The position numbers and the translations under genes are program-made. This document shows positions 9,347-40,479 of a DNA stretch of 40,803 bases, piece by piece (position 1 is the stretch's first letter; each line of letters begins with the position of its first letter). The notes beneath the pieces are model-generated. The model made no database searches, was not told the DNA's origin, and saw only the letters and a program-made list of their open reading frames with translations. Source of the stretch: Chlorokybus atmophyticus (taxonomy: Eukaryota; Plantae; Mesostigma and Chlorokybus algae); assembly GCA_009103225.1 (NCBI GenBank), contig RHPI01002272.1:78905-119707 (forward strand). The letters run 5' to 3'.

Positions 9347-10191
9347 TACCACACTGAAGGCAGCAGCCGCCTTGTAAGCAGCCGCCATGCGTACTCCCGG
9401 TATGTGTCGTACTTGGTTACACTCTCACAACATGAACAATGACAAGCTTGTACACACGTGCCGGCGCGTGTCCGTGCGCGCGCACATATCCATGGCTGCA
9501 TGTGCGTGGATGCGCACGCGCAGGAACGCACACACATGCTCACATGTCAATGTGCAGGCATATGGACAACAGGTTGAAGGTCCCTGAGAAGCTGCGGCTT
9601 CTTGGCGTCCCACGAGCGGCTGGCGGTGTACGAGGACCGCGTCGTGGGCGGTGGGCGACCGCATGGCCGCCAACAACCCGCGGAGAGCCATCATCACCTG
9701 CGGAGGGGGGGACTGTGCATGCACATGCGCACCAGCCTACGTCCTTCGGGCATTTTCGCCCATCCTCAACACTTTCCAGGTCGTAAGTGAGTCCCGCACG
9801 CGCATACATACACGTATATAATGCTATTATAACCGTCATATAACAGTCATGTACATAAGCCACAACTCATACACACTAGTAATGCACCACCTCGGCTCAT
9901 AAACGCTCAGCGCATATGTGGCATGAGTACCTCACAACCACATACGATTGCCTGTCAAGTTGCGGTCCAGCAATGCTACTTCTTTTGTTGCTCACTTATA
10001 CATCCCCTGCGCTACTACTGCAGCCCACCTGATCCAACGGGTGTATGTGACGACAACGGTTTGTTCTACTTGTACTTGGATCGAAGAAAGGATGGTTGTC
10101 AGGCTTTGCAGCTAACTGAGTGCAAGTTAGACCAGATATTCTATTGAATCAGTGGTTTACGCTGAAGCGGTGCAAGGAGTTCAATTGTATG

Positions 10192-10408
<217 letters not shown>

Positions 10409-10841
10409 AAGATGCTGTAGAGCAGCGCTNACAATCACGCATGCGCGCACGCAGGTAGCTTAAACATACACTCGCGCGCGCACACAGCTGCGACCACCAA
10501 TGCCCGCATGGCACGCAGCCACGCACCTCTTCAGGCATGCATGTCCACACGTACATGCACACAAAGAGAGCCACACAGTGTTGCACACATGCAGGTATAT
10601 GCTCAGGTCTCGAGTATGAGCACATCATGTCAGTGCACATTTTCTGCACATGTTTAGACGCATTCAGACATAAACATACATATACATGCAGACTCAAGTG
10701 GACACATATGCAGGCTCGAAGTTCCCGCGTTCGATATACTACAACCTGCAGTTTAATTACCTAAAGCTTATACAAAGTCCCTTTCGTCTCTTGACAAGGT
10801 GGAGTACACCTTGTCAAAAGGCGAGAGGAAGGCACCGCAAC

Positions 10842-11478
10842 TCATGAGTTCCCCTCTATGGCATTCATTTCGTCCAATGCACGTTGTGTTGAAGACGGTG
10901 CAGCAGTTTTGTTATGTTTCTCATACTGAAGCTCCAAGAACGTGTAGTACTCTGGCCGATTTTCCGCCTCAAGGTAATGTCGATTGCCAATAGGCCACTG
11001 CTTCCACAGCTCGAGCCGGTAGTAGTTGGCAATGTCAATGGGCTCAACCATGAGTCGCATCGTGTTGCCTCTCACCAACCAGTCACTGGACTCGCTGAAA
11101 AAATAGGCAGGCAACATGCCATCCATGTACCACTTGTATGCTATACGCCAGAAGTCCCGTGTAACCCTGTTAGGTTGGTGGAGAGGTCATAACAGTACCG
11201 AGCAAGCATTCAATTGCACTAATCTTAAGCTGCAATGCATGTCGGCGGACCTGCGTGCACGGTCGACCCTCCACAAGCGCTCTGCTTGCGGGCTGCCATC
11301 ACTGCCACTGCCACGATATGCTCTGAAGTCGGCGTAGCAGTCTGCCGAGGTCAGCATAAAGGCTTGTATTGTGTCCATGGCGTCTTGTACCTCATTGCGC
11401 CACATGTTAGCAAACTTTGTTTCATGGCTCCGCTGCGCGGCAATACGCGATTCGACCACTCTCCGTGGCTGCAAAGCG
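10842..11478 (-). CDS. EDS1/PAD4/SAG101-type EP domain (2 exons) of NLR1
   Basis: Spliced sequence AMDTIQAF...CYADFRAY...RARR|VTRDFWRIAYKWYMDGMLPAYFF...WLVRGNTMRLMVEPIDIANYYR...HYLEAENRPEYY matches the EP consensus order (YYDxF ... R..L..FW ... LP..F ... W ... YRxLVEPLDIAxYYR ... Y ... RP.RY). Confidence 0.88.
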
Positions 11479-14400
11479 CTGCAAAAATATAATGCACTAA
11501 GACTATGGATGTCATGGTAGGTCAACACTGCAGGTCAATCAGGCTGCAATGCAAACCTGTGTGACATGGGCATGAAGGCCGGCACACTTCCCAAGTGCCT
11601 GACGAGGGTGTCGTACCCAGCCCAGGGTTCCTATTGCATGAGGATGGCATCGAAAGAGCCACGGAGTTACTAACGCAGACATCATGTAAGACTATTCGGA
11701 AAGGCTGCGTGCATGCTGCAAAGTCTTGCTCGTGCATGAAGGTTTGCATAGCGTGGAGCAAATGCACCACCCCCTTTAAACTTGCCTGCTGATCGCCAAG
11801 GGTGAAGTAGCCAAATTTTCGAATCTGCATTGGTACGTGCTTTCTTTCTCCGGGGGGGCGGAAGATGACTGGAACCAACCACCCGGAAAGATTTCCCTCC
11901 TCATAAACCTTGCATAATATGTTCCCGTACTCGTCGTGCGTCCCCGCGCCCACCCAATCAGCTGCGGTCGGCTGTCTCAATGAAAATCGCTCATAATACT
12001 CATCACAAACCACCACCACCTGAAGCGTTATGTTAACAACCGCAGACCAAAGCATGCATATCTGTCATTCTCGCGTGCTTGCTTACTACATAAGCTATGT
12101 AAGATGGGAATGGTTGATGACAGCCACGATGCGCAAGATGTTCTACACTATCAGAGATGATGTGACCATTGGTACCTTTGTGCCATCCTTGAACATCTGC
12201 CCAATAAAAGCTGGCCATGACTGGTACCCAGTTTTGTCATCGATAATGACATGTACATTATCTTGTTGCAGTTGCTCAGCAAGCCTCCACACACGCTTTG
12301 CGTGAAGCTTGTCAAAATGGCAGTAGCTAATGAATACTGTTAACTTGGTCTCTTTTCCCTGTCCGCTATGTGCCACAGCACGCAAATTATTATAAACATG
12401 GTACAGCATTTGCCGCACAAGAGATTGCGCATGGTTTGCGAAGACAGCCATGCAAAACTTACGCAGTAGCAGCATTGTTGACAGAGGCCTCGGCCTTGGC
12501 CTCCGCGTCCTGCTGGTGCTGCTGCAGCACAGCAGTAGCAGCGTTGTTGACAGCGGCCGCGGCCTTCGCCTTCGCCTCCTGCTGGTGCTGCTGCAGCACA
12601 GCAACAACGGCAGGATGTAGCGCACTGAAGTCTTCTGGCAGCGCCTTCAAATGGAAGCACCCATACAGCTTCAGAATGTGCAGAGCCGTGAGCTTGCCAA
12701 AAGACTTTGGCAGCGCCACCAAACTCGCGCACCAGCTTAGGTCTAGCTCACGCAGAGCAGCGAGCTTACTGAAAGACTCTGGCAGCACCGCCAAGTAGTC
12801 GCACGCGCTCAGGTTCAGCGTTTCTAAGTTGTCCAACTTGCTGAAGGACTCCGGCAGTGCCATCAAGCTGCCGCAGTAGCTCAAGTCAAGCGTCTGCAGG
12901 GCAGCGAGTTTGCCAAAAGACTCCGGCAGCGTCGCCAAGCTTTTGCAATTACTCATGTCCAGCGTTTGTAGGGCAGCAAGGTTGTCAAAGGACTCCGGCA
13001 GTGCCGCCAAGCTGTTGCACTTGCTCAGGTCCAGCGTCTGCAGGGCAGCCAGTTTGCCAAAAGACTTCGGCAGCGCCGCCAAGCTGTTGCACTTGCTCAG
13101 GTCCAGCATTTGTAGGGCAGCGAGGTTGCCGAAAGACTCCGGCAGCGCAGTCAAGTTGAGGCTAATGCTTAGGTCCAGTTTCTGTAAATTTATGAGACCT
13201 CCAACAGACTTGGGTAGCATGCGCAACCCGGTTCGGAAGAGATCTAAAACCCGTAGCATAGTGAGCCCGCCAAGCGCTTCAGGCAGCTCGTTCACTTGAT
13301 AAGAATCACGCAGCACCAGAACTTGCAGCGCCTGGAGGTTTCCTATGGACTCAGCCACCGTCATCGAGGCATCATTATGGACGGCTTCTTCTACTATAAG
13401 GACGACCAGATTTTGGCATGCAGCGGCATTGCACAGGAAAGCGCTCAAGGCTGAATAGCGTGGACGTCTCCATTCGAGATAAACCAGCTCTCTACGGACC
13501 CTGTTGGGAGCGTGAAGTGTGCCATCCCAATCAGTTGTGCCAAGGTCTAGCATGCGGAGGCGAGGCATGAAGGCCATGCCACTTGATGTTTCACTCCAGT
13601 TGAGCCCAGACCAGGACACAGTCTCGGCGTGTTCAGAGCCCTGCATACAACCACAGCATGCCAAATATTAGTAGTTCTCATGTGCTCACTTTCAACAGCC
13701 ATGCTGTAACATACTACCAGAACATAGTGTATTGCACGTTCTTGTATTGGATGCATGCATGCAGCAACCTTCAAGCCAACCAAAAGAACATGAGATGAAG
13801 GAACCAAGCTGGAACGTGGCATATAAGCACCTGTTGAAATACGGCGCTCAACTCCTTGGGCAACCATATGTGCTTGGGCGGGTCTGCTCGATTGGCAATC
13901 ATTCGCCCCATGTCGCGAAGTTGGCCATGTACCGAAAAGCAGATATTGCCTTTGAAACTTAATGAGTATGGCTTGTGCTGGTTTGGTCTCCATTTCAAGC
14001 GAATAAGGGACAACTCCACTAGGGTGTACACTTTTAGCGACGCGCGGTTCCCCCACGCCGGAAGCAGGAAGTCTTTATTCTTCCCCAATGCAAAGCAGCA
14101 AATGTCCAGAAACACTCGCTGATATGTGGGCGTTAAAGAATTGTAGCTAAGCTCCAGCGTTTTCCACAACCGGTCATCTTTGGTACGTTTAAGCCCCTCA
14201 GCCTGTTGCAATTGATCCAGTGCAACTTTCCAAAACTGCACATCATTGCTGCTGCGCTTGCCCAGAAAGGAGCCCACGACTTCAAGTGCGAGCGGCAGGC
14301 CGTCGCACGCCTGGATGAAATCCTTGACGTTGGGCTCCAACTCCTCAGGCACTGGATGCGAGCCGAAGGCAAAGTGGCAAAACAGTTTTCTAGCGGGCTG

Positions 14401-15819
14401 AGCGTCCAGCTCTTCCACCTCCTCCACCAAAATATGCTTGTCATGCCCCCTCAATAAGCCGTGCTCGCGAGATGTCACCAGCACACGGCTTCCTTCACCC
14501 AGCAGAGGGTTGGCGGTCTCCAGATTGAAAGGACCGAGCAGAGCTTCTTTTTGAACCTCGTCCCAGATGTCATCAACAAAGAGCAGCACCTTCCGCCCTT
14601 GCAAATGGTTCTGGAGAAGCATCTTTGCTTGATCAATCGCCTTGGCTGCATCACGAAGTCCCTTATTCCCAGTAAGCGCTTCAAGCATATCCTGTTGCAG
14701 TTTAACCAATTCTCCAGTGTCTTGACGCTCTTTCCCGACCTCTACAAAGCAGCAGCTGCGAGGAAAAGTGCTGCACAGCTCGTTGTAAACCGCCTTGGCA
14801 AGTGTAGTCTTTCCGACGCCGCCCATGCCCCAAAGCCCCAGCACGACGACCTTGCTTACAGAGGCAGCAGCACTCAGCTTCTTGAGGACAGCTTCAACTC
14901 GCCGGTCAATGTCCACTGGGTATTTGGCGACATACAACGCATGGCGGTCCAACGTTTTCAGCACGTCGTCCACCACTTTGTTTGCTAAAGCAACTGGGTC
15001 ACTGACAAACAACAGCCAACGTTAGGAAACCACACATGACAACCTGAGCAGAGATGTTCTCCAGCGACAACTCAACTCACCCATTCTCCAGCCTCAGGCC
15101 CGTTGTTCCAAATGCTTTATCCAGCGCAACATCGTATGCAGGTTTGTTCTGGATATACTGCTGCTTGCCACTCAGGCATGCGCTGAAAACAAATCATACT
15201 CGTAACCAGGAACATGGCTACCGGACTGACAAGTGACAGAGTCTAGAAACTGTGCTCACCATTCAATACTTTGCTGAATCTCGGCTTTCAGGCTGTCAAA
15301 GTCATCATCGAAGAAGATGGGCTTAACGATGTTTGCTGAATCCTCCATCATGATGCGCAGCTCTTCCAGGCAGCACCACGAGTCCCCATAGTTACGCGAC
15401 AGAACAGGCATTTTGATGCGAGCGGTGTGTACATTGGCGGTGATCACAGTCCAGGCGTTGTCCCCGGGCTGCAAGCTGAGTTCATCTACGAAGCAGGTCA
15501 AGCTCACTTGTTTGAAGTAATCATGCAGATAATAAACGAAGTTTTTCTTAACGTCCCCTCTATGGCTCAAGAAAATGTCACTGCCAGCGTGAGGATTGGT
15601 CTTCGACAGAACGCAACTGTCTGTGATGTGCAACGTGTGAGTTGACTTGTCAGCGGACTTACAGTGACTGTATTTCATGGTACTTGACGGCTCAAAACCT
15701 GCAACCTTCTTGCTTTGCAAAGAATATGTTACAAGACACATGCGCAGCATATGCACCATCAAAGGCACGCTTGGGTTGTTTGCAAGCTTACCGTCCAGGT
15801 TTGCATTTGGGGCAGACAT
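10842..15819 (-). CDS. TIR-NB-ARC-LRR-SEFIR-EP (EDS1 EP-domain) NLR, apparently intact, 10 exons
   Basis: Manual splice model: 15819-15792, 15620-15260, 15182-15081, 15001-13831, 13640-12463, 12365-12176, 12019-11786, 11630-11557, 11478-11251, 11166-10842. Total 3891 nt = 1297 codons including stop. All introns are GT-AG except one GC-AG, and phases match throughout. The start codon is the least certain part; further 5' exons are possible. Confidence 0.88.
11557..12365 (-). CDS. SEFIR-type TIR-like domain (3 exons) of NLR1
   Basis: Spliced sequence LTVFISYCHFDKLHAKRVWRLAEQLQQDNVHVIIDD...KDGTK|VVVVCDEYYERF...GAGTHDEYGNILCKVY...LVPVIF...HVPMQIRKFGYFTLGDQQ|EPWAGYDTLVRHL follows the SEFIR/TIR_2 pattern (VFISY-H, LA-L, DV-ID, V-VC-Y, G-G--E, IPV-F, P-L, GY--L-R-L). 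Confidence 0.78.
12463..13640 (-). CDS. LRR exon of NLR1 (about 10 repeats of 24 aa) plus Ala/Gln linker
   Basis: Repeated LxxLDLSxCxSLxxLPESFGxL units (72-bp period), preceded by ELVYLEW-type post-NB sequence and ending at the donor GC|gtaagt. Confidence 0.97.
13831..15001 (-). CDS. NB-ARC exon of NLR1
   Basis: P-loop GMGGVGKTT, kinase-2 LLFVDDIW, RNBS-B SRVLVTSR, CDGLPLAL, RNBS-D FLDICCF, and an MHD-position variant VHGQLRDMG. Confidence 0.97.
15081..15620 (-). CDS. N-terminal TIR domain exons of NLR1
   Basis: DIFLSHRG-DVKKNFVYYLHDYF...CFVDELSLQPG...MPVLSRNYGDSWCCLEELRIM...KPIFFD. The Glu at the usual TIR NADase catalytic position (WCxxEL) is retained. Confidence 0.93.
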
Positions 15820-16635: not shown

Positions 16636-18339
16636 CAAAACCAGATCAGTGAATATGTCGAACGGAGTCGAACCTGTCGCCCATCATCCATGTCAGGATT
16701 TTTCACGTGCTTCATGCATATGTCAGGAGACGCCTAGCCCCTAGCAGTGCTATGCCCATGCACAGGTGTCATTGAACCCGCGTTGTATACCTCGTATGGT
16801 ATGGCTCCCGAACCCTTACCATGCTAGGCGTCCTACCAATGATAGCCCACCATGTCATGTCTGCACATGCATCAAGCAAACTAGGCCTTAATGCGGGGAG
16901 GAAGTGGCGGGCTCCAGCCTGGGCCGGAGGTTCAGGCGCATGTCGAAGGTTTGATGTTCTACGATATGAATGATAAGACGTGACCAATTCATGCGCTCAA
17001 GCTTGTTTCCTTGATTTGCCGGCGGCAGGGCCTGGAGTGGTGCGGTGCGGTGCGGTGAGGCGTTGGCGGGCGGGCTGCAGTGTGTCCCCGCCGCCGGGCT
17101 CGGGGAAGGACTTTCTCCTGGATGGGAAGGAGAGCAGCGCAGCAGGCGCCAGCTGTCCGTCTTCAGCGCCATGCTGGGCGGCGCTGCTTAGCAAACGCCA
17201 ACGGCGCAGCCGGGAGGATTAACGTAGATTGCTACAGCTGCAGGCACGGCTTTCCGCAGGTGCTCTACAATGTCTCGCCATTGCTGCCTGCCGTCTGCCC
17301 TCATAATGCTTGTCTAGCTAAACCAACTTCACAGCACGTAAATCTGCTGGTACCGCACAAGTACCACAGGCTGATCAGCGCCTGTGTGTGTTGTTGTGAA
17401 TGCATGCATGCACACACGTGCGCGCTCACTCACTCATACACACACATGTCTTCACAGACATGGACATATGTGGTTCTTGCAGCCATTCAGTGCTTTAGCT
17501 CCTTGCACGAAGCAGCTAAACTGACGGCAAGCATGCTCTGGTATCTAAGTACGTGCACTTCTTCTGTTGTCAATGTCGTTGGGGCCGTACTGCTGGTGGC
17601 AGTAACAGTAATGGCTTCGCGGTATGATGAAGTGGCAGCGCAAGAGATTGTTGTGTACGGTGTAAACTGTGGAACAGATGAACGACAGTCAAAAGTACAG
17701 TCTGCTTCTGTTGTATTGGACGCAACTCACAACGCTTGAACGCCNTCCTCACCCGCCGCGGGAAGTTAAGCTATGGTCAGCAAACGTATACAAAGGAACA
17801 GTGCTCAGCATAGTTGACGCAGTATGTAGATACACTCTCTCCTCGCTGACCATATCCTCTATGGTTTGTTTAACATGTATACACAAGCGTACCACTCTCG
17901 TCTGCGACGCAGCAACTGTTTTGTTTGCGAGCATTTGCCCTGTTTGTTGCGCATGCGCATGCATGGAACGGGCCTTTAATGTGCACACTAGACGTTGTTG
18001 CATGTCAAAGCTTGCCGTGCCAGGTGCTCATCATATATACACCGCTTCTTACCACCAGTAGATACGCTTTGTCGTTTTCTGCAGCTTCACGCCACTTGGT
18101 CAGCGCTGGCATGGCTATCGCTGAACTAAGTGAACTTTGACAGGACTTGGGCGCTCCGCACCCATGAGGCTGGTCTGCACCGCGCTTGGCTTAGCAGCAG
18201 AAGCAGAAGCGCTTGCGCTTGAGATGGGCGGGCTGATGTTACGGAGGCTTCCTGCAGTGCTAACTGCGGCTGCATCCATTGTCACTGGTGCCGGCTACTG
18301 GAACCACACACATCTCAATCGTGGTAGTGCTGAACTCTA

Positions 18340-18690
18340 TCTGACCTCGGCCGCTCCTAACAATGCTGCTATTGCGTAAGTTTCAACTACAGCCTTCTTT
18401 GCATAGCATGTACAAGAATTCTACTCCAACAAATGATGTGACATGCTTTTGACATTTTGCAAGTGCTGTGGCAAATAGCGGACAAAGACAAGAGGCAACA
18501 GGGGCACGGTCCACGACGCCAGAAGCAAAGTCGACAATGTCTACAAGCTACTGCCAGCTCAACATTCGACACAACAGGCAGAGGCTTGTTGAGCAACTGC
18601 AATGGGACGTCATTGTGGACTACAAGAATAATTGCCAGTCATGGCCGGTGTTTATTGGGCAGATGTTAAACGATGGCACAGAGGTACCAG
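18340..18690 (+). pseudogene. Relic of NLR linker end, intron and SEFIR exon 1
   Basis: aatgctgctattgc|gtaagt donor as in NLR1/NLR2, then EAKSTMSTSYCQ...LVEQLQWDVIVDYK..SWPVFIGQMLNDGTE|gtacc; opposite strand to NLR1. Confidence 0.8.
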
Positions 18691-19930
18691 TTGTAACATC
18701 ATTGCTTGTAATGAACGCGCATGGTTGTCATCAACATATCACAGCCTCTTGCATCTCATGTAGTAGCTATAGTAAGGCACGCCTTAAAGACAGCAATGCA
18801 GTGTGACTGGTTTGTATATGTACTCCTGACGGTTCAGGTCATTGGGTCAGGATGACCTGAAAGGTTATCCTGACCTGGTCCTTTCACATATGCAAGCCAG
18901 TGCGAAGTAAATTCTGACTGAGCAGTCTATCCGTGTAAACCACTCACTGCAGGCTTGTGGTCAGACACCCTCACTAGGCGCCCATTGCTTGCAATAAATC
19001 TAATCGTCACTGGTTGATCTGGACTGGATACCTTGCTCCCTGTACCCACTACCTCCAAAAACTCGCGCCGTTTGTACTCTATGGGAGTCTCTTCTACTCA
19101 GCGCATCCAGTACACACTGTGTGCGTGTTATCTACATAATCTGTAAACTTTCGTGTACATGGCTTGGGTGGCAGGGTACACATAAATTGCGTCACGTGTG
19201 CAAGTTGTAGGAGCGGGGTTGTAGCTGCACTGTGCCAGTGGTAATGTGGGCCTCCCCGCGTGGGACCGATGCTACTGTTGGTGCGGAGCTTGGTGTAGAT
19301 AGCGGCCATGGGACGGTTGTCACACCGATTTGTGGAGCTCCTCTCCCCTGGGGCTCAGGGACGTTGCAAACGGGGTTGTACCACCGTCTTGACAATGGTG
19401 TACGTCGTGTTGAAGGTATGGAGAATTGTCAGTCAGTGTTTTACACACGCCTAAAAGCACACGTGCAGCACTGTCATGAGAGTCTGCACTTGCTTGCGCA
19501 GAGAGGGAGTTAATCAAGGTCATGATTATCTCAAAGATTGCATGCGTGCACAAGCAAACACACGCATACATGCGCATGCGCACGCACAGCAGAGCGCGAG
19601 AGGGACGGTGCACAGCCTCTTATGTGACAGACTGCCTCTCTCACTAAGCAGATACTGCCCACATCTGTGCAAGGGTCCTCTTGTACACAAAATTGTGTGA
19701 GAGACGAGGTACAGCGGCGGAGTAGTACTCAGTAACACTCAGGGGACTCCCCTTCAGTCGCTATGTGAAACCATTGACGCCAAGATTGGTGGTGCTGTTT
19801 TGCCCCTTGTTTTGTCACACACTGTCTAACAGCACCGTTGTCACACAGGCCTCCTCTGCCTGACCTACAGGTAGAAAGGGTGAGCACCCTGTTGTTGCTT
19901 GGCATGCATGAAAAGACACACGGCTTGCAG

Positions 19931-26725: not shown

Positions 26726-26966
26726 NNNNNNNNNNNNNNNNNNNNNNNNNNNNNNNNNNNNNNNNNNNNNNNNNNNNNNNNNNNNNNNNNNNNNNNNNNN
26801 NNNNNNNNNNNNNNNNNNNNNNNNNNNNNNNNNNNNNNNNNNNNNNNNNNNNNNNNNNNNNNNNNNNNNNNNNNNNNNNNNNNNNNNNNNNNNNNNNNNN
26901 NNNNNNNNNNNNNNNNNNNNNNNNNNNNNNNNNNNNNNNNNNNNNNNNNNNNNNNNNNNNNNNNNN
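26726..26966. other. Assembly gap (N)
   Basis: Run of n. Confidence 1.
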
Positions 26967-35041: not shown

Positions 35042-35686
35042 TCATGAGTTCCCTTCGATGGCATTCAATTCGTCCAATGCGCGTTGTGTTGAAGATGGTG
35101 CAGCAGTTCTGTTATGTTTCTCATACTGCAGCTCCAAGAACGTGTAGTACTCTGGCCGATTGTCTGCCTCAAGGTAATGTCGATTGCCAACAGGCCACTG
35201 CTTCCACAGCTCGAGCCGATAGTAGTTGGCAATGTCAATCGGCTCAACCATCAGGCGGAAAGTGTCGCCTCTTGCACACCAGAGATTGGACTTGTTGAAA
35301 AAGAAAGCAGGCAACATGCCTTCCATGTAACGATTGTATGCTGAACGCCAGAAGTCCCATAGAACCCTGTCATGTCAGGTTGGTCACCGCATGATGTGGA
35401 GGTCATACCAGTACTTAGCAAGCCGTAAACTGCATTGAACTCAAACTGCAATGCATGTCGTCTGACCTGCATGCGTGTTTGACTGATTTCAAGCGCTCTG
35501 CTTGCGAGCTGTCATCACCGTCACGATATGCTCTGAAGTCGGCGTAGTAGTCTGCAGAAGTCTGCGCAAAGGCTTGTATCGTTTCCATGGCAGCTTGTAC
35601 CTCGTTGCGCAACTTGTCAGTAAATTCTGTTTCATGTTTTCGCTGCTCGGCAATACGCGAACCGCCTACTGTCGGTGATTCCAAAG
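35042..35686 (-). pseudogene. EP-domain exons of NLR2
   Basis: EVQAAMETIQAF...YYADFRAY...KHACR|VLWDFWRSAYNRYMEGMLPAFFF...GDTFRLMVEPIDIANYYRLELWKQWPVGNRHYLEADNRPEYY; intron 35466-35367. Confidence 0.87.
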
Positions 35687-38600
35687 CTGCAAGGGTAAAT
35701 GCATTGAGATTACGCGTGTCATGTGGTAGGTCAACCCTGCATGTCAGATGCCAATCAGGCCGCAATGCAAACCTGGGCTGCATGGGCTGCATGAAGGGCG
35801 GCTTCTGCTGCTCGGTGATACGCGAACCGCCCACTGTCGGTGACTCTGAAGCGCTGCAAAGGTAAATACACTGAGACTACGCATGTCATGTGGTAGATCA
35901 ACACTGCACGCTGAATGCCAATCAGGCCGCAATGCAAACCTGGGCTGCATGAAGGGCTGAACACTTCCCAAGTGTTTGACGAGGGTGTCGTACCCAACCC
36001 AGGTTCCCTATTGCACGCAGAACCAGAAGACCCGCGGAATTACTTAAGCACACATCATTTAAAACTATTTTGACTAGGTGCATGCTGCAAGGTCTCGCTC
36101 GTTCATTGAGAAGTGTGCACAGCTTGGAGCAAATGCACTACACTCTTTGTAGTGTTTGAAACTTGCCTGCTGATCGCCAAGGGTAAAGCAGTTAAAATTT
36201 CCGGATCTGTGCAGGTACGTGCTTTCTGTCTCCAGGGGCCTGGAAGACGACTGGAACCAACCAGCCAGAGCGGTTCTGCTCTTCGTAGACCTTGGTTAGT
36301 ATGTTCGTGTACTCGTCGTGCGTTCCTGCTCCCAATCTGTCAGCTGCAGTCGGCGTTTTCAGTGAAACCGTTCGTAATGCTCGTCACAAGCAACGATCAC
36401 CTGCAATGTCACGAGTACAACCAGCAAACCGATCAATGCATGGCTGTTGTGCAGGCGTGCCTGCTGACGGCATGAGATGCGAGAAGTTGGGATTGTCTGA
36501 TGACGGCGACCACGCGCAAGGTGTTCTACACTTTGGAGACGATGTGACAACAAGTACCTTTGTGCCATCGTTTGAACATTTGACCAATAAGAATCGGCCA
36601 TGACTGGTTTCCAATTTTGTAGTCGACAATGACGTCTATATTGTCTTGTTGCAGTTGCTCAGCAAGCCTCCGCACACGCTCTGCATGATGCTTGTCAAAC
36701 TGGCAGTAGCTGATAAACACAGTCAACTTGGCCTCTGACGCCGCGGACGCTGCCTTTGTAGCCTCTTGTCCCTGTCCGCTATGTGCCACAGCACATGCAA
36801 ATAACCATAAGCATGGTACCTGTAGTACAACACCTGCCGCACATGGCATGTGTGCATGATTTGCAACGAAAGCTATAGCAAAACTTACGCAATAGCAGCA
36901 TGGTTGACAGCCGCTGCCGCCTCCACCTCCGCCTTCGTCTCCCGCAGGTGCTGCTGCAGCACAGCAACAACAGCAGGATCCAACATACTGCAAGATTTTG
37001 GCAGTGCCTTCAAGTGGGAGCACCCGTCCAGTTTCAGCTTTCGCAGTGCAGAGAGCTTGCCAAAGGACTCCGGCAGCACCGCCAAACTGTCGCACCAGCT
37101 TAGGTCCAGCTCACGCAGAGCAGTGAGCTTGCTGAAGGACTCTCCCAGCACTGCCAAGCGGTCGCACGCGCTCAGATTCAGCGTTTGCAGATTGTTCAAC
37201 TCGCCGAGGGACTCCCGCAGTGCCTCTAGGCTGCCGCAATAGCTCAAGTCAAGCGTTTGCAGGGCAACGAGACTACCAAAGGACTCCGGCAGCTCCGCCA
37301 AACTGTTGCAATTGGTCAGGTCCAGCATCTGCAGGGCAGTGAGTTTGCCAAAGTACTTTGGCAATGCCGCCAATCTTTCGCAACTTCTCAGGTCCAGCGT
37401 TTGCAGCATAGCGAGGTTGCCAAAGGATTCCGGCAGCTTCACCAAGCTGAGGCTATTGCTCAGGTCTAGCATTTGCAGCATAGCGAGGTTGCCAAAGGAC
37501 TCCGGCAGCTTCGCCAAGCTGTTGCACTTGCTCAGGTCCAGCATTTACAGGGCAGGTTGCCAAAGGACTCCGGCAGTGCCGCCAGGCTGCCGCAATAGCT
37601 CAAGTCAAGCGTTTGCAGGGCCACGAGACTACCAAAGGACTTCGGCAGCTCCTCCAAGCTGAGGCATTACCTTAAGTCCAATTCCTGAAGGTGCATGAGA
37701 TCTCCTACAGACTCGGGTAGCTTGTGCGAACCGGTTCTAGAGAAAACTAGAGTCTGTAGCATAGCGAGCCCGCCAAGCGCTTCAGGCACATTCATCAGAG
37801 GTTCACAGCCCCGCAGCACCAGGATTTGCAGCGCCTTGAGGTTCCCAATGGACTCAGTCGCCACCATTGAGACATCAACATGAACGATTTTTTCTACAAT
37901 TAGAACCACTAATGTAGTGCACGCAGCGGCATTATACAAGAAACTGCTCAAGGCGGAACAGCGTGGACGTCTCCACTCGAGATAGACCAGCTCTCTACGG
38001 ACCCTATTGGGAGCGTGAAGTGTGCCATCCCAATCAGTTGTGCCAAGGTCTAGCATGCGGAGGCGAGGCATGAAGGCCATGCCACGTAATGTTTCGCTCC
38101 AGTTGAGTCCAGCCCAGGACACAGTCTCGGCTTGTTCAGAGCCCTGCATACAACAACAGCATGCCTAAGATCAGCAGTTCTCACGCGCTCACTTCCAACA
38201 GCCATGCTGTCACATACTCCTGAAACACCGTGGGTTGCACATTTTTGCTGGACCCATGCATGCAACCTTCACAAGCCAGTCAAAAGGACATGAGATGAAG
38301 GAACCAAGGTGGAACGTGGCATACATGCACCTCTTGAAGTAATGTGCTCGATTCCTTTGGCAACCAGATGTGCTTGGGCGGGTTGGCTCGACTGGCAATC
38401 ATTCGCCCCATGTCGCGAAGTTGGCCATGTATCGAAAAGCAGATATTGCCTTGTGCACCCAATGAGAATGGCTTGTACTGGTCTTGTCTCCATACCAAGC
38501 GAATAAGGGACAATTCCACCAGGGTATTCACTTATAGTGCCGCGCCCTTGCCGCACGCTGGAAGCAGAAACTTTTCATTTTTCCCAAATGCGAAGCAGCA

Positions 38601-40479
38601 GATGTCCAGAAACACTCGCTGATAAGTGGGCTCTAGGTAATTGTAGCTGAGCTCGAGCGTTTTCCACAACCGGTTATCCTTGGTACCTTCAAGCCCCTCT
38701 GCCTTTTGCAATTGATCCAGTGCGTCTTTCCAAAACTGCACATCACTGTTGCTGCTGCGCTTGTGAAGAAAGGATCCCACGACCTCGAGCGCGAGTGGCA
38801 GGCCTTGACACGCCTGGATAATATCGTTGGCGATTGGCTCCAACTCCACAGGCACGGTAAGCAATTTGCCAGGTTCAGTGAAGGCATAATTGTTGAAAAG
38901 TTCTCTAGCCGGCTGATCGTCGAGCAGCAGCACCTCCTCCACCAATGTATGCTTCACATGCCCCTTCAATAACTGGTGATTACGAGAGGTCACCAGCACA
39001 CGACTGCCTAACAACACGATATTGAGTCAGTCGTGTAGTGTCAGCCTTATTGTGTCAGTCTCACTGTGTAGGCAATGATCCACTGGTAATGTGCCTTACC
39101 GGTACCCAGCAGAGGGCTGTCTCCCCAAAAATTGCAACAACCGAGGAGGGCTTCTTTCTGATCCTCGCTCCAGACGTCATCAACAAAAAGCAGCACCTTC
39201 TGCCCTTGCAAGCGGTTCTTGAGAATTGCCATTCCATGAATGGAGGTCAATGCCTCTACAGGCTCACTCCCCAGCTTTTTGAAGCATTTGTTGTTGCAGC
39301 TGTACCAGCTTCCCGTTCTCTTTACATGCATCTTTTTCGACCTCTACAAAGCAGCAGCTGCCTGAAAATTTGCTGTACAGGCTGTTGTAAACTGCTATTG
39401 CAAGTGCAGTCTTTCCGATACCGCCCATGCCATGAAGACCCAGCATGATGACCTTGCTTCCAGCGGCAGCAGCATTCAACTTGTTGAGTACAGCTTCAAC
39501 GCGCCTGTCAATGTCCACTGGATGTTTGGCGACTTCCAAGCGGGGGGGTAGCCTTCTCAGCACGCCTGACACCACTGCATCTACTAAAGCAGTCCTGGTA
39601 CTGCCAACAAAGAGCAGATGTTGAAAACATTGCCGCAATCATGATGACAACGGCATCACAACACGAACCAGTGACAACCCAACTCACGGTTATTGATTGA
39701 CCCTCCAGCCCGGTCTGTTAAACGCCTCCTCTACCGCCGTGCGATATTCAAGTTTGTTTTGGACGTATAGGGTCTCACCGCGCTGGCATGCGCTGAAAAC
39801 ACACAACATGCTGGTCATGATGGAAATCCTGCTGATTGCTGGCGAGTCTAGGAGAAAAGGTAAACTATACTGCCAGTACAGTGTACCCACCTGTGAATAC
39901 TTTCCAGGATTATGGCTTTGAGATCGTCAAAGTCATCATAGAAGATAGGCATGATTTGATGTTTCCTGGACTCTCCAACATAATGCGCAGCTCCTCTAGG
40001 CAGTAGCAGGATTTCCCGTATCGACGAGAAAGGACAGGCATCTTGATGCGAGCGGACCGCACATTGGCAATGATGACATCCCAAGCTCCGTTGGTTTCCC
40101 CGGGCTGCAAGCTGAGCTCGTCCACGAAGCAGGTGATTCCAACTCTGTCAAGCATGCGATGCAGATAGTCAACAAGATTGTTCTTGACGTCAGGCCCTCT
40201 ATGGCTCAGGAAAACGTCGCAGGGAGAGTGAGGGATAGTCTTTGACAGCGGCATATTGTCTCCGTCTGCAACACGCAAGTTGACTGGTCAGTGGGCTCAT
40301 GGAGCATTATTTGCTGGAGGGAAATGCCGTCTGGCGATCAGCTGGTGAATAAGGGAGCTGCACAGGATCGATACAAACCGCAACGCACACCAACATGTCA
40401 AGCACATTTGAGTAGTAGTCGTAGTGTTGGTCAACAACCTACCGTTGAGGTTTGCATTGGGGGCCAAAGGTTTGTTCAT
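35042..40479 (-). pseudogene. Paralogous TIR-NB-ARC-LRR-SEFIR-EP NLR pseudogene (NLR2)
   Basis: Same exon order and splice sites as NLR1. Lesions: +2 frameshift near 39955, TAA at 39690-39692, +1 frameshift near 39278, AAA>TAA at 38532-38534, a stop at 37667-37669 followed by frameshifts, indels in the SEFIR exons (near 36570, 36362 and 36195), and a 2-bp loss at the EP exon 1 acceptor (near 35686). Confidence 0.9.

Follow-up and report, generated by a model that had tools for sequence, protein, structure and literature searches.

A predicted bacterial-type SEFIR domain between the leucine-rich repeats and the EP domain of a TIR-type receptor of Chlorokybus atmophyticus

Here, we describe a receptor gene on the minus strand of a 40,803-nucleotide stretch of Chlorokybus atmophyticus DNA (assembly GCA_009103225.1, contig RHPI01002272.1, positions 78,905 to 119,707), which we call the window. 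The gene encodes a nucleotide-binding leucine-rich repeat receptor (NLR) of the TIR type (TNL), in which the leucine-rich repeats (LRRs) are followed by a second domain of TIR fold. An earlier reading of the letters alone, hereafter the original prediction, had taken this domain for a SEFIR. SEFIR domains are adaptors in animal interleukin-17 (IL-17) signalling and NAD+-depleting domains in bacterial anti-phage defence. As far as the identity of the domain alone is concerned, our analysis makes it very probable that it is a SEFIR of the bacterial type, a member of the STIR superfamily with TIR fold. That it acts as a second NAD+-cleaving unit of the receptor is a more tentative proposal, which is weighed in the Discussion.

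Results

The window is eukaryotic DNA with short introns, and the gene is covered by a protein model of the Joint Genome Institute (JGI; EukProt Chlorokybus atmophyticus jgi/Chlat1/1185, here P0002). The minus strand encodes, in this order, a TIR, an NB-ARC domain, LRRs, a SEFIR domain in three exons and an EDS1-type EP domain. The N-terminal TIR (15259-15582) is a canonical one, recognized by Pfam (TIR 4.6e-10, TIR_2 1e-11), and its translation keeps the catalytic motif SWCCLEEL. It is followed by the NB-ARC exon (13774-15012; Pfam NB-ARC 7.5e-34) and the LRR exon (12462-13664; Pfam LRR_14 1.8e-35 and related families). The first base of SEFIR exon 1 (12176-12365) completes the codon opened in the LRR exon, and the exon encodes strand A (TVFISY, within TVFISYCHF), helix A, strand B (VHVIID) and helix B. 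Exon 2 (11768-12019) contributes strand C (VVVVC, within VVVVCDEYY), an insertion (C-C') that separates strand C from the next helix, the GAGTHDEY helix and strand D (LVPVIF), and exon 3 (11557-11630) contributes the last helix (GYDTLVRHL) and a linker. The codon of the THDEY glutamate, the candidate catalytic residue, is the GAG at 11930-11932. The SEFIR exons have AG acceptors and GT (or GC) donors and together encode about 165 residues. All five motifs on which the original prediction was based (VFISY, V-VC-Y, GAGTHDEY, LVPVIF and GYDTLVRHL) are in frame on the minus strand, and its span of 11557-12365 gives exactly the outer bases of the three-exon block.

Exon 3 stops after the second base of a codon and is spliced to the EP exon at 11478; the resulting junction, MPMSH/SALQP, is present in P0002. 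The EP domain occupies approximately 10845-11478 with one intron; Pfam EDS1_EP matches over 10845-11126 (1.9e-9, 37.9 bits, cut-off 23.1), and the domain is continuous in P0002. Since the EP domain comes after it, the SEFIR domain is internal and not C-terminal in the receptor. P0002 also agrees with our model in the junctions between the LRR exon and exon 1 and between exons 1 and 2, and in the acceptor of exon 3. A long (GA)n/(CT)n microsatellite (10181-10450) lies just downstream of the end of the gene.

The two models differ at the end of exon 2. We find a GT donor at 11767-11766, which is the one used in the paralogue P0001, or a GC donor at 11785-11784, in which case the exon ends at 11786. 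P0002 leaves exon 2 at an internal GT (11908-11907) and skips 11908-11786; it reads GNILCK/EPWAGYD, and 41 codons with the LVPVIF of strand D are spliced out. If this were the transcript that is made, the SEFIR domain would lose strand D and only a broken remnant would be left. Indeed, the internal donor (AAG/GTTTAT) resembles the donor of exon 3 (CAG/GTTTGC), and P0002 itself speaks for such a product. However, the JGI junction is probably wrong or that of a minor isoform: the 41 codons contain no stop, agree more closely with P0001 (37 of 41 identical) than does the half that P0002 keeps (27 of 37), and match the strand-D motif of bacterial SEFIRs in a profile made from bacterial sequences only. 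Moreover, the JGI models of the paralogues P0001, P0009 and P0010 all contain the strand-D part. A receptor with a broken SEFIR domain is, in our judgement, improbable.

For the assignment to a family, the exons of the window gene were scored singly and P0001, in which the domain is contiguous, served as proxy for the whole domain; it is 73-90% identical to the exon pieces of the window (82% over exon 2). P0001 has 415 residues and consists of a hydrophobic N-terminus, the contiguous SEFIR and an EP domain. Exon 1 gave 21.6 bits with Pfam TIR_2 and 18 bits with Pfam SEFIR, both under the cut-off, and 1.8e-11 with the bSEFIR model of PADLOC; its neighbours in a protein language model are SEFIR/TIR_2 clusters. 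Exon 2 alone had no match in Pfam, PADLOC or the PDB and no usable one in the Atlas, and exon 3 alone gave no significant score on the bacterial-only SEFIR profile. P0002, which lacks half of exon 2, reached 20.2 bits with Pfam SEFIR (gathering cut-off 23). In contrast, the P0001 domain matched Pfam SEFIR (PF08357) with 41 bits (cut-off 23) over positions 2-143 of the 150 positions of the profile. It also matched Pfam TIR_2 (37.7 bits, cut-off 28) and had no match to PF01582. With PADLOC it gave 74.4 bits for bSEFIR, and the sole competing TIR model was a weak match to ThsB. Millman et al. (10.1101/2022.05.11.491447) call a bacterial domain a SEFIR if its SEFIR match is stronger than its TIR matches; this is the case for P0001, with a margin that is small within Pfam.

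A scan of bacterial genomes gave one relative, from Mycoplasmatota bacterium WC44 (locus L003), and a word search from this relative gave 20 bacterial proteins. On a profile made only from the SEFIR domains of these 20 proteins, the P0001 domain scored 86 bits, exon 1 of the window 37.4 bits (p ~1e-13) and exon 2 22.8 bits (p ~4e-9), all far above chance. The gene's own N-terminal TIR scored 4.6 bits. Conversely, a profile made from the algal and environmental sequences only had a single significant match in the PDB, the SEFIR of Bacillus cereus (BcSEFIR; 5Y8E/5Y8F, 5e-7), with TIRs at E values of at least 0.3. When the bacterial rows were added, BcSEFIR came first (5e-43), followed by human Act1 SEFIR (2e-11) and bacterial TIRs (~1e-5). 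Because of this ranking, we regard the domain behind the LRRs as a SEFIR that is, judged by its sequence, nearer to the bacterial than to the animal kind.

Is the SEFIR label an artefact of overlapping profiles, and the domain a generic TIR of the TIR_2 type? P0001 scores with TIR_2 (37.7 bits) almost as high as with SEFIR, exon 1 alone scores slightly higher with TIR_2, and TIR NADases are close behind the SEFIRs in the fold comparison below. However, the double label of SEFIR and TIR_2 in Pfam is found in all 20 bacterial relatives and is, hence, a property of the SEFIR family. Furthermore, the PADLOC score has no TIR competitor beyond the weak ThsB match, the half of the domain from strand C to the end finds only BcSEFIR and no TIR in the PDB, and the canonical TIR of the same gene is hardly seen by the bacterial SEFIR profile. 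A generic TIR is, therefore, a very remote alternative. The original prediction of a second TIR-fold domain behind the LRRs, of the SEFIR type and not a canonical TIR, is supported by these results.

A word search with exon 2 within its open reading frame (ORF) of 177 amino acids had no matches, and one with the P0001 domain found Chlorokybus proteins only. A HMMER search of the whole library with exon 2 had seven matches: P0002, two other Chlorokybus proteins including P0001, three environmental ORFs and one chance match. No land-plant protein was among them, at the limited reach of a query of 78 residues. An NCBIfam look-up gave nothing useful.

The fold was predicted with AlphaFold2 for the P0001 domain and not for the joined exons of the window. 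The predicted local distance difference test score (pLDDT) was 67.7 with an alignment of 8 rows and 77 with 24 rows, the latter with a predicted template modelling score (pTM) of 0.78. The model has the order strand A, helix A, strand B, helix B, strand C, a short extra helix with a loop, a long helix, strand D, strand E and a last helix; the strands lie at residues 9-14, 38-41, 63-68, 111-115 and 135-136, the extra helix at 70-77 and the long helix at 88-104. The helix encoded by exon 3 of the window aligns with residues 153-162. In a structural comparison with VIA-align the model matched the SEFIR of Act1 best (Z 16.1, 147 residues, root mean square deviation 3.9), then that of IL-17RA (13.7), the TIR of SPARTA (13.3) and BcSEFIR (12.7), with the TIRs of SARM1 and RPS4 at about 11; the first, 8-row model gave the same ranking. 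A TIR/SEFIR fold is thus predicted, with SEFIRs ranked at the top, as the original prediction required. SEFIR and TIR cannot be told apart by the predicted fold alone.

The core of the domain consists of VFISY in strand A, the aspartate that ends strand B, V..C...Y around strand C, a G-x-G turn with a glutamate on the next helix, and the proline of strand D. The glutamate is part of the motif G-G-x-G-x-E and is present in 20 of 20 bacterial SEFIRs; BcSEFIR has GVGTE. The algal and environmental members share G-x-G-T-[HR]-x-E without exception. The two additional residues before the glutamate, H-D in the window gene, give a spacing that is shared by two of the bacterial proteins, P0029 and P0030. 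Over the half from strand C to the end, an alignment of 22 rows has no invariant residues except Y, G, G, E and P, and of the 15 columns without variation in all 20 bacterial sequences the window exons retain 13, the glutamate included. In the P0001 model the glutamate is E93, in the second turn of the long helix 88-104 that follows strand C.

In TIR NADases the catalytic glutamate is carried by helix C. The predicted helix of the THDEY glutamate takes the same topological place. Sequence profiles connect the algal domain with TIRs only over the first 60-75 residues, and a search of the PDB with a profile of the half from strand C to the end found no TIR. Likewise, an hhalign comparison with the gene's own TIR was confident only over the first ~45 residues. 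The suggested correspondence to the TIR glutamate is one of predicted topology. Since it is an invariant acidic residue on helix C, after a glycine-rich turn, in a family that cleaves NAD+, the THDEY glutamate is likely the catalytic residue. This bears out its choice as a candidate functional residue in the original prediction.

Among the bacterial relatives, P0030 (L004, 8001-9968) is encoded between a PLD-SNF2 helicase, an MmeI-type methylase and an ORF of 3076 residues without Pfam matches, which looks like a typical defence island. The environmental relatives come from metagenome contigs of the ENA; the SEFIR-like genes on two of them (L001, 4727-5448; L002, 5145-5800) are 31-40% identical to the algal domain. 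On both contigs, which were examined for P0004 and P0006, a piece with SVFISYCHE lies upstream and is separated from the remainder by what resembles an intron, and for this reason the environmental ORFs look like exons of eukaryotic genes. L002 also bears a DNA methylase and a DUF5906 gene, and its host could be an alga, a virus or a mobile element. We considered that the pairing of SEFIR and EP is conserved in these relatives and rejected it, since no EP signal was found beside the genes in L001 and L002, in a test of limited power.

A tree with a midpoint root, without animal or fungal SEFIRs, was calculated from four algal or environmental domains and the 20 bacterial ones, which all go back to one query. 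The sequences from eukaryotes group together (support 97/91), and their group joins P0029 and P0030 (93/97); these have the longest branches. The algal SEFIR has its nearest relatives in bacteria, and a bacterial origin, which had also been suggested before, is plausible and in keeping with the tree; being unrooted and thinly sampled, the tree gives neither direction nor timing. Contamination as the source of the SEFIR exons is ruled out by their introns, their host-like composition and the in-frame fusion to the receptor.

SEFIR domains are also found outside the receptor in C. atmophyticus. P0001, P0009, P0010 and P0003, which are encoded on other scaffolds, are free proteins with a hydrophobic N-terminus, a SEFIR and an EP domain, and an EP domain follows the SEFIR in every Chlorokybus protein model that we found. 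Because of a long PADLOC envelope, a relationship between EP and the C-terminal domain of bacterial SEFIR proteins was considered; it was rejected, as the EP halves of P0001 and P0009 have no bSEFIR match.

The window holds two more SEFIR loci. A second copy of the whole TNL-SEFIR-EP gene lies at ~35045-40278 on the minus strand. Its NB-ARC and LRR reading frames are split, and its SEFIR exons (35928-36798) have three single-base indels, namely an insertion in exon 1 and a deletion and an insertion in exon 2. The identity to the intact gene is no higher in the exons (77-85%) than in the introns (71-83%). This copy is probably a pseudogene, or else a badly assembled copy. The original prediction pointed out that GAGTHDEY is kept in both paralogues. 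The motif is indeed present in the second copy (~36195-36365), but this copy is frame-broken and its introns are conserved as well as its exons, so that the shared motif says little on selection.

The other locus, on the plus strand (18224-18695), was found by tblastn with P0001 and with exon 1. It consists of two parts, one that corresponds to the hydrophobic N-terminal exon of free SEFIR-EP proteins (18224-18334, 81% identity) and one that is a copy of SEFIR exon 1 (18468-18695, 57% identical to residues 48-126 of P0001). A tblastn search of the window with P0001 revealed no exon 2 or EP part of this copy, and the ORF of its exon 1 had no Pfam match. The third relic copy of exon 1 that had been noted is thus real; with the anchor exon upstream it belongs, however, to a decayed free gene for a membrane-anchored SEFIR protein and not to a receptor. 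Elsewhere in the window there are two runs of N (2219-2756 and 26726-26966) and a plus-strand ORF (17080-17736) with a weak Pfam match to DNA-PKcs CC1/2 (20.5 bits, below the cut-off of 26.1).

Discussion

The receptor of C. atmophyticus carries two different TIR-fold domains, as had been supposed, and each has a glutamate in the respective motif, SWCCLEEL in the N-terminal TIR and THDEY in the SEFIR. In bacteria, the SEFIR domain is the part of the defence protein that depletes NAD+ (10.1101/2024.02.11.579819; 10.64898/2026.09.04.749371). By analogy, we infer that the intact bacterial-type SEFIR behind the LRRs is of the enzyme type and acts as a second NAD+-cleaving unit. The module of SEFIR and EP, which is also present as free proteins in the genome, is here fused behind the LRRs. 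The SEFIR domain would self-associate when the receptor, or its free SEFIR-EP partners, are brought together, and the associated SEFIR would then cleave NAD+ with the THDEY glutamate, as the bacterial SEFIR does, and serve as a nucleotide-consuming unit beside the N-terminal TIR. We favor an enzyme-type SEFIR because the algal domain keeps the glutamate and the aspartate of strand B, whereas the adaptor type of animals lacks the glutamate. Taken as a whole, with catalysis included, this proposal comes a little short of being evenly balanced between right and wrong.

Several observations weigh against it. First, the placement of the glutamate may be off by one helical turn relative to the catalytic glutamate of TIRs, since the glutamate and the proline of strand D are 20 residues apart in the algal domain and 19 in BcSEFIR, but 14 in the TIR of the same gene; when the hhalign alignment with that TIR is extended greedily, the THDEY glutamate is paired with the second E of CLEEL, with near-zero confidence. 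Second, two of the columns invariant in bacteria are changed, from Met to Ile and, before strand D, from Lys to Trp, and our literature search found no paper that names a catalytic residue of a bacterial SEFIR. Third, the JGI model splices out strand D. Fourth, the sister copy in the window is decayed, and the fused form is, hence, not under uniform constraint. Finally, the parts behind the LRRs are at the periphery of the known TNL tetramers, and therefore induced proximity is less obvious for an enzyme in this position than for an N-terminal TIR.

A different function is conceivable. Animal SEFIRs act as adaptors, and the algal SEFIR could be a non-catalytic homotypic adaptor as well: it would bind another SEFIR, as IL-17 receptors bind Act1, and so bring the free SEFIR-EP proteins with their membrane anchor to the receptor once this is activated. 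Such partners do exist in the same genome (P0001, P0009), with SEFIR domains that are ~70-80% identical. The best structural matches of the model are the adaptor SEFIRs of IL-17 receptors and Act1/TRAF3IP2 (PDB 9OT1, 4NUX and 3VBC; Z 16.1, 13.7 and 11.5), and the HGLHT turn of Act1 aligns with the algal GAGTH. The exchange D40A at a predicted SEFIR-SEFIR contact abolishes bacterial defence (10.1101/2022.05.11.491447), and the aspartate at the end of strand B, the sole bacterial-invariant aspartate near that position, is kept in the alga. However, in sequence the domain is far nearer to bacterial than to animal SEFIRs: Act1 is found only with the profile that contains bacterial rows, and the algal-only profile retrieves no animal SEFIR from the PDB. 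More important, neither the glutamate nor the G-x-G turn varies in the enzyme-type bacterial family or among the algal members, and both are absent from Act1, which has Ile/His at the place of the glutamate. A purely adaptor role is thus rather unlikely, and in any case adaptor and enzyme roles can coexist.

Plant NLRs carry integrated domains behind their LRRs. This would lead to the assumption that the SEFIR-EP tail is an integrated decoy, a copy of a free SEFIR-EP signalling protein that would serve as bait for pathogen effectors aimed at this protein and whose own chemistry would be irrelevant to signalling. Duplication from free genes, or into them, has involved the whole SEFIR-EP module and not SEFIR alone. 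In addition, a canonical N-terminal TIR with a catalytic motif is already present in the receptor, and the fused and free copies in the window turn over fast, with one broken and one a relic. On the other hand, all core residues are retained, which a bait neither requires nor excludes. We give the decoy the same limited likelihood as the adaptor; both deserve real weight. SEFIR plus EP as the moving unit is in accordance with either of them.

How does the putative enzyme-type SEFIR of C. atmophyticus compare with known systems? By profile it belongs to the same family as BcSEFIR and the bSEFIR anti-phage protein (Millman et al., PADLOC). They have in common the core VFISY...D...V..CD..Y...G.G..E...Y....P with the invariant glutamate, and BcSEFIR, with a fold Z of ~12.7, has the highest sequence identity among the structural matches (22-23%). 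The domain context differs. The bacterial SEFIR is N-terminal and followed by a C-terminal domain of ~300 residues, which the algal proteins lack, whereas the algal SEFIR is internal, split by introns and placed after TIR, NB-ARC and LRRs and before an EP domain without a match to the bSEFIR model. Furthermore, the algal loop before the G-x-G turn is longer and, except for P0029 and P0030, the H-D before the glutamate is additional. The catalytic TIRs, such as plant TNL TIRs, SARM1, SPARTA TIR-APAZ and AbTir, share the fold (Z 10.5-13.3) and carry, as a putative counterpart of the algal residue, a glutamate on the helix after strand C, like the SWCCLEEL of the N-terminal TIR; they differ from the algal domain in that the latter has no match to Pfam TIR (PF01582) and has an insertion between strand C and the glutamate helix. 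Compared with other domains that are found behind the LRRs of TIR-type NLRs, such as C-JID or the WRKY domain of RRS1, the position is similar, but C-JID has a jelly-roll fold and the algal domain a predicted TIR fold.

The family is known, but the architecture in which the domain is found is new for the plant lineage. Our literature search found no paper that combines SEFIR and Chlorokybus and no description of a plant NLR with a SEFIR domain, in line with the earlier statement that SEFIR is not a standard domain of plant NLRs. The published work on Chlorokybus TNLs deals with the N-terminal TIR and mentions only short EP-like sequences in green algae, and an atlas of eukaryotic TIRs from 2026 used SEFIR only as outgroup. 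SEFIR-like N-termini have been reported in fungal NLRs.

EDS1 of seed plants reads the products of TIRs with its EP domain. It is tempting to speculate that SEFIR-EP is an old output module of the green lineage, in which EP senses a nucleotide made by a TIR and switches on NAD+ cleavage by the SEFIR, comparable to the sensor and effector of Thoeris, and which exists in two forms, free with a membrane anchor and fused to a receptor. We consider this unlikely, more so than the adaptor or the decoy. If it were true, the first partner of the EP domain would have been a SEFIR enzyme and not the lipase-like domain of EDS1.

Altogether, a predicted bacterial-type SEFIR with the invariant glutamate is present inside a TIR-type NLR of one of the earliest-branching streptophytes. 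The glutamate, which bacterial and algal SEFIRs have and Act1 lacks, may be a simple marker to tell enzyme-type from adaptor-type SEFIRs. If the SEFIR is active, the receptor would have two different nucleotide-consuming units of TIR fold, and the pairing of SEFIR with EP would offer a testable route to how TIR signalling was wired before EDS1 existed.

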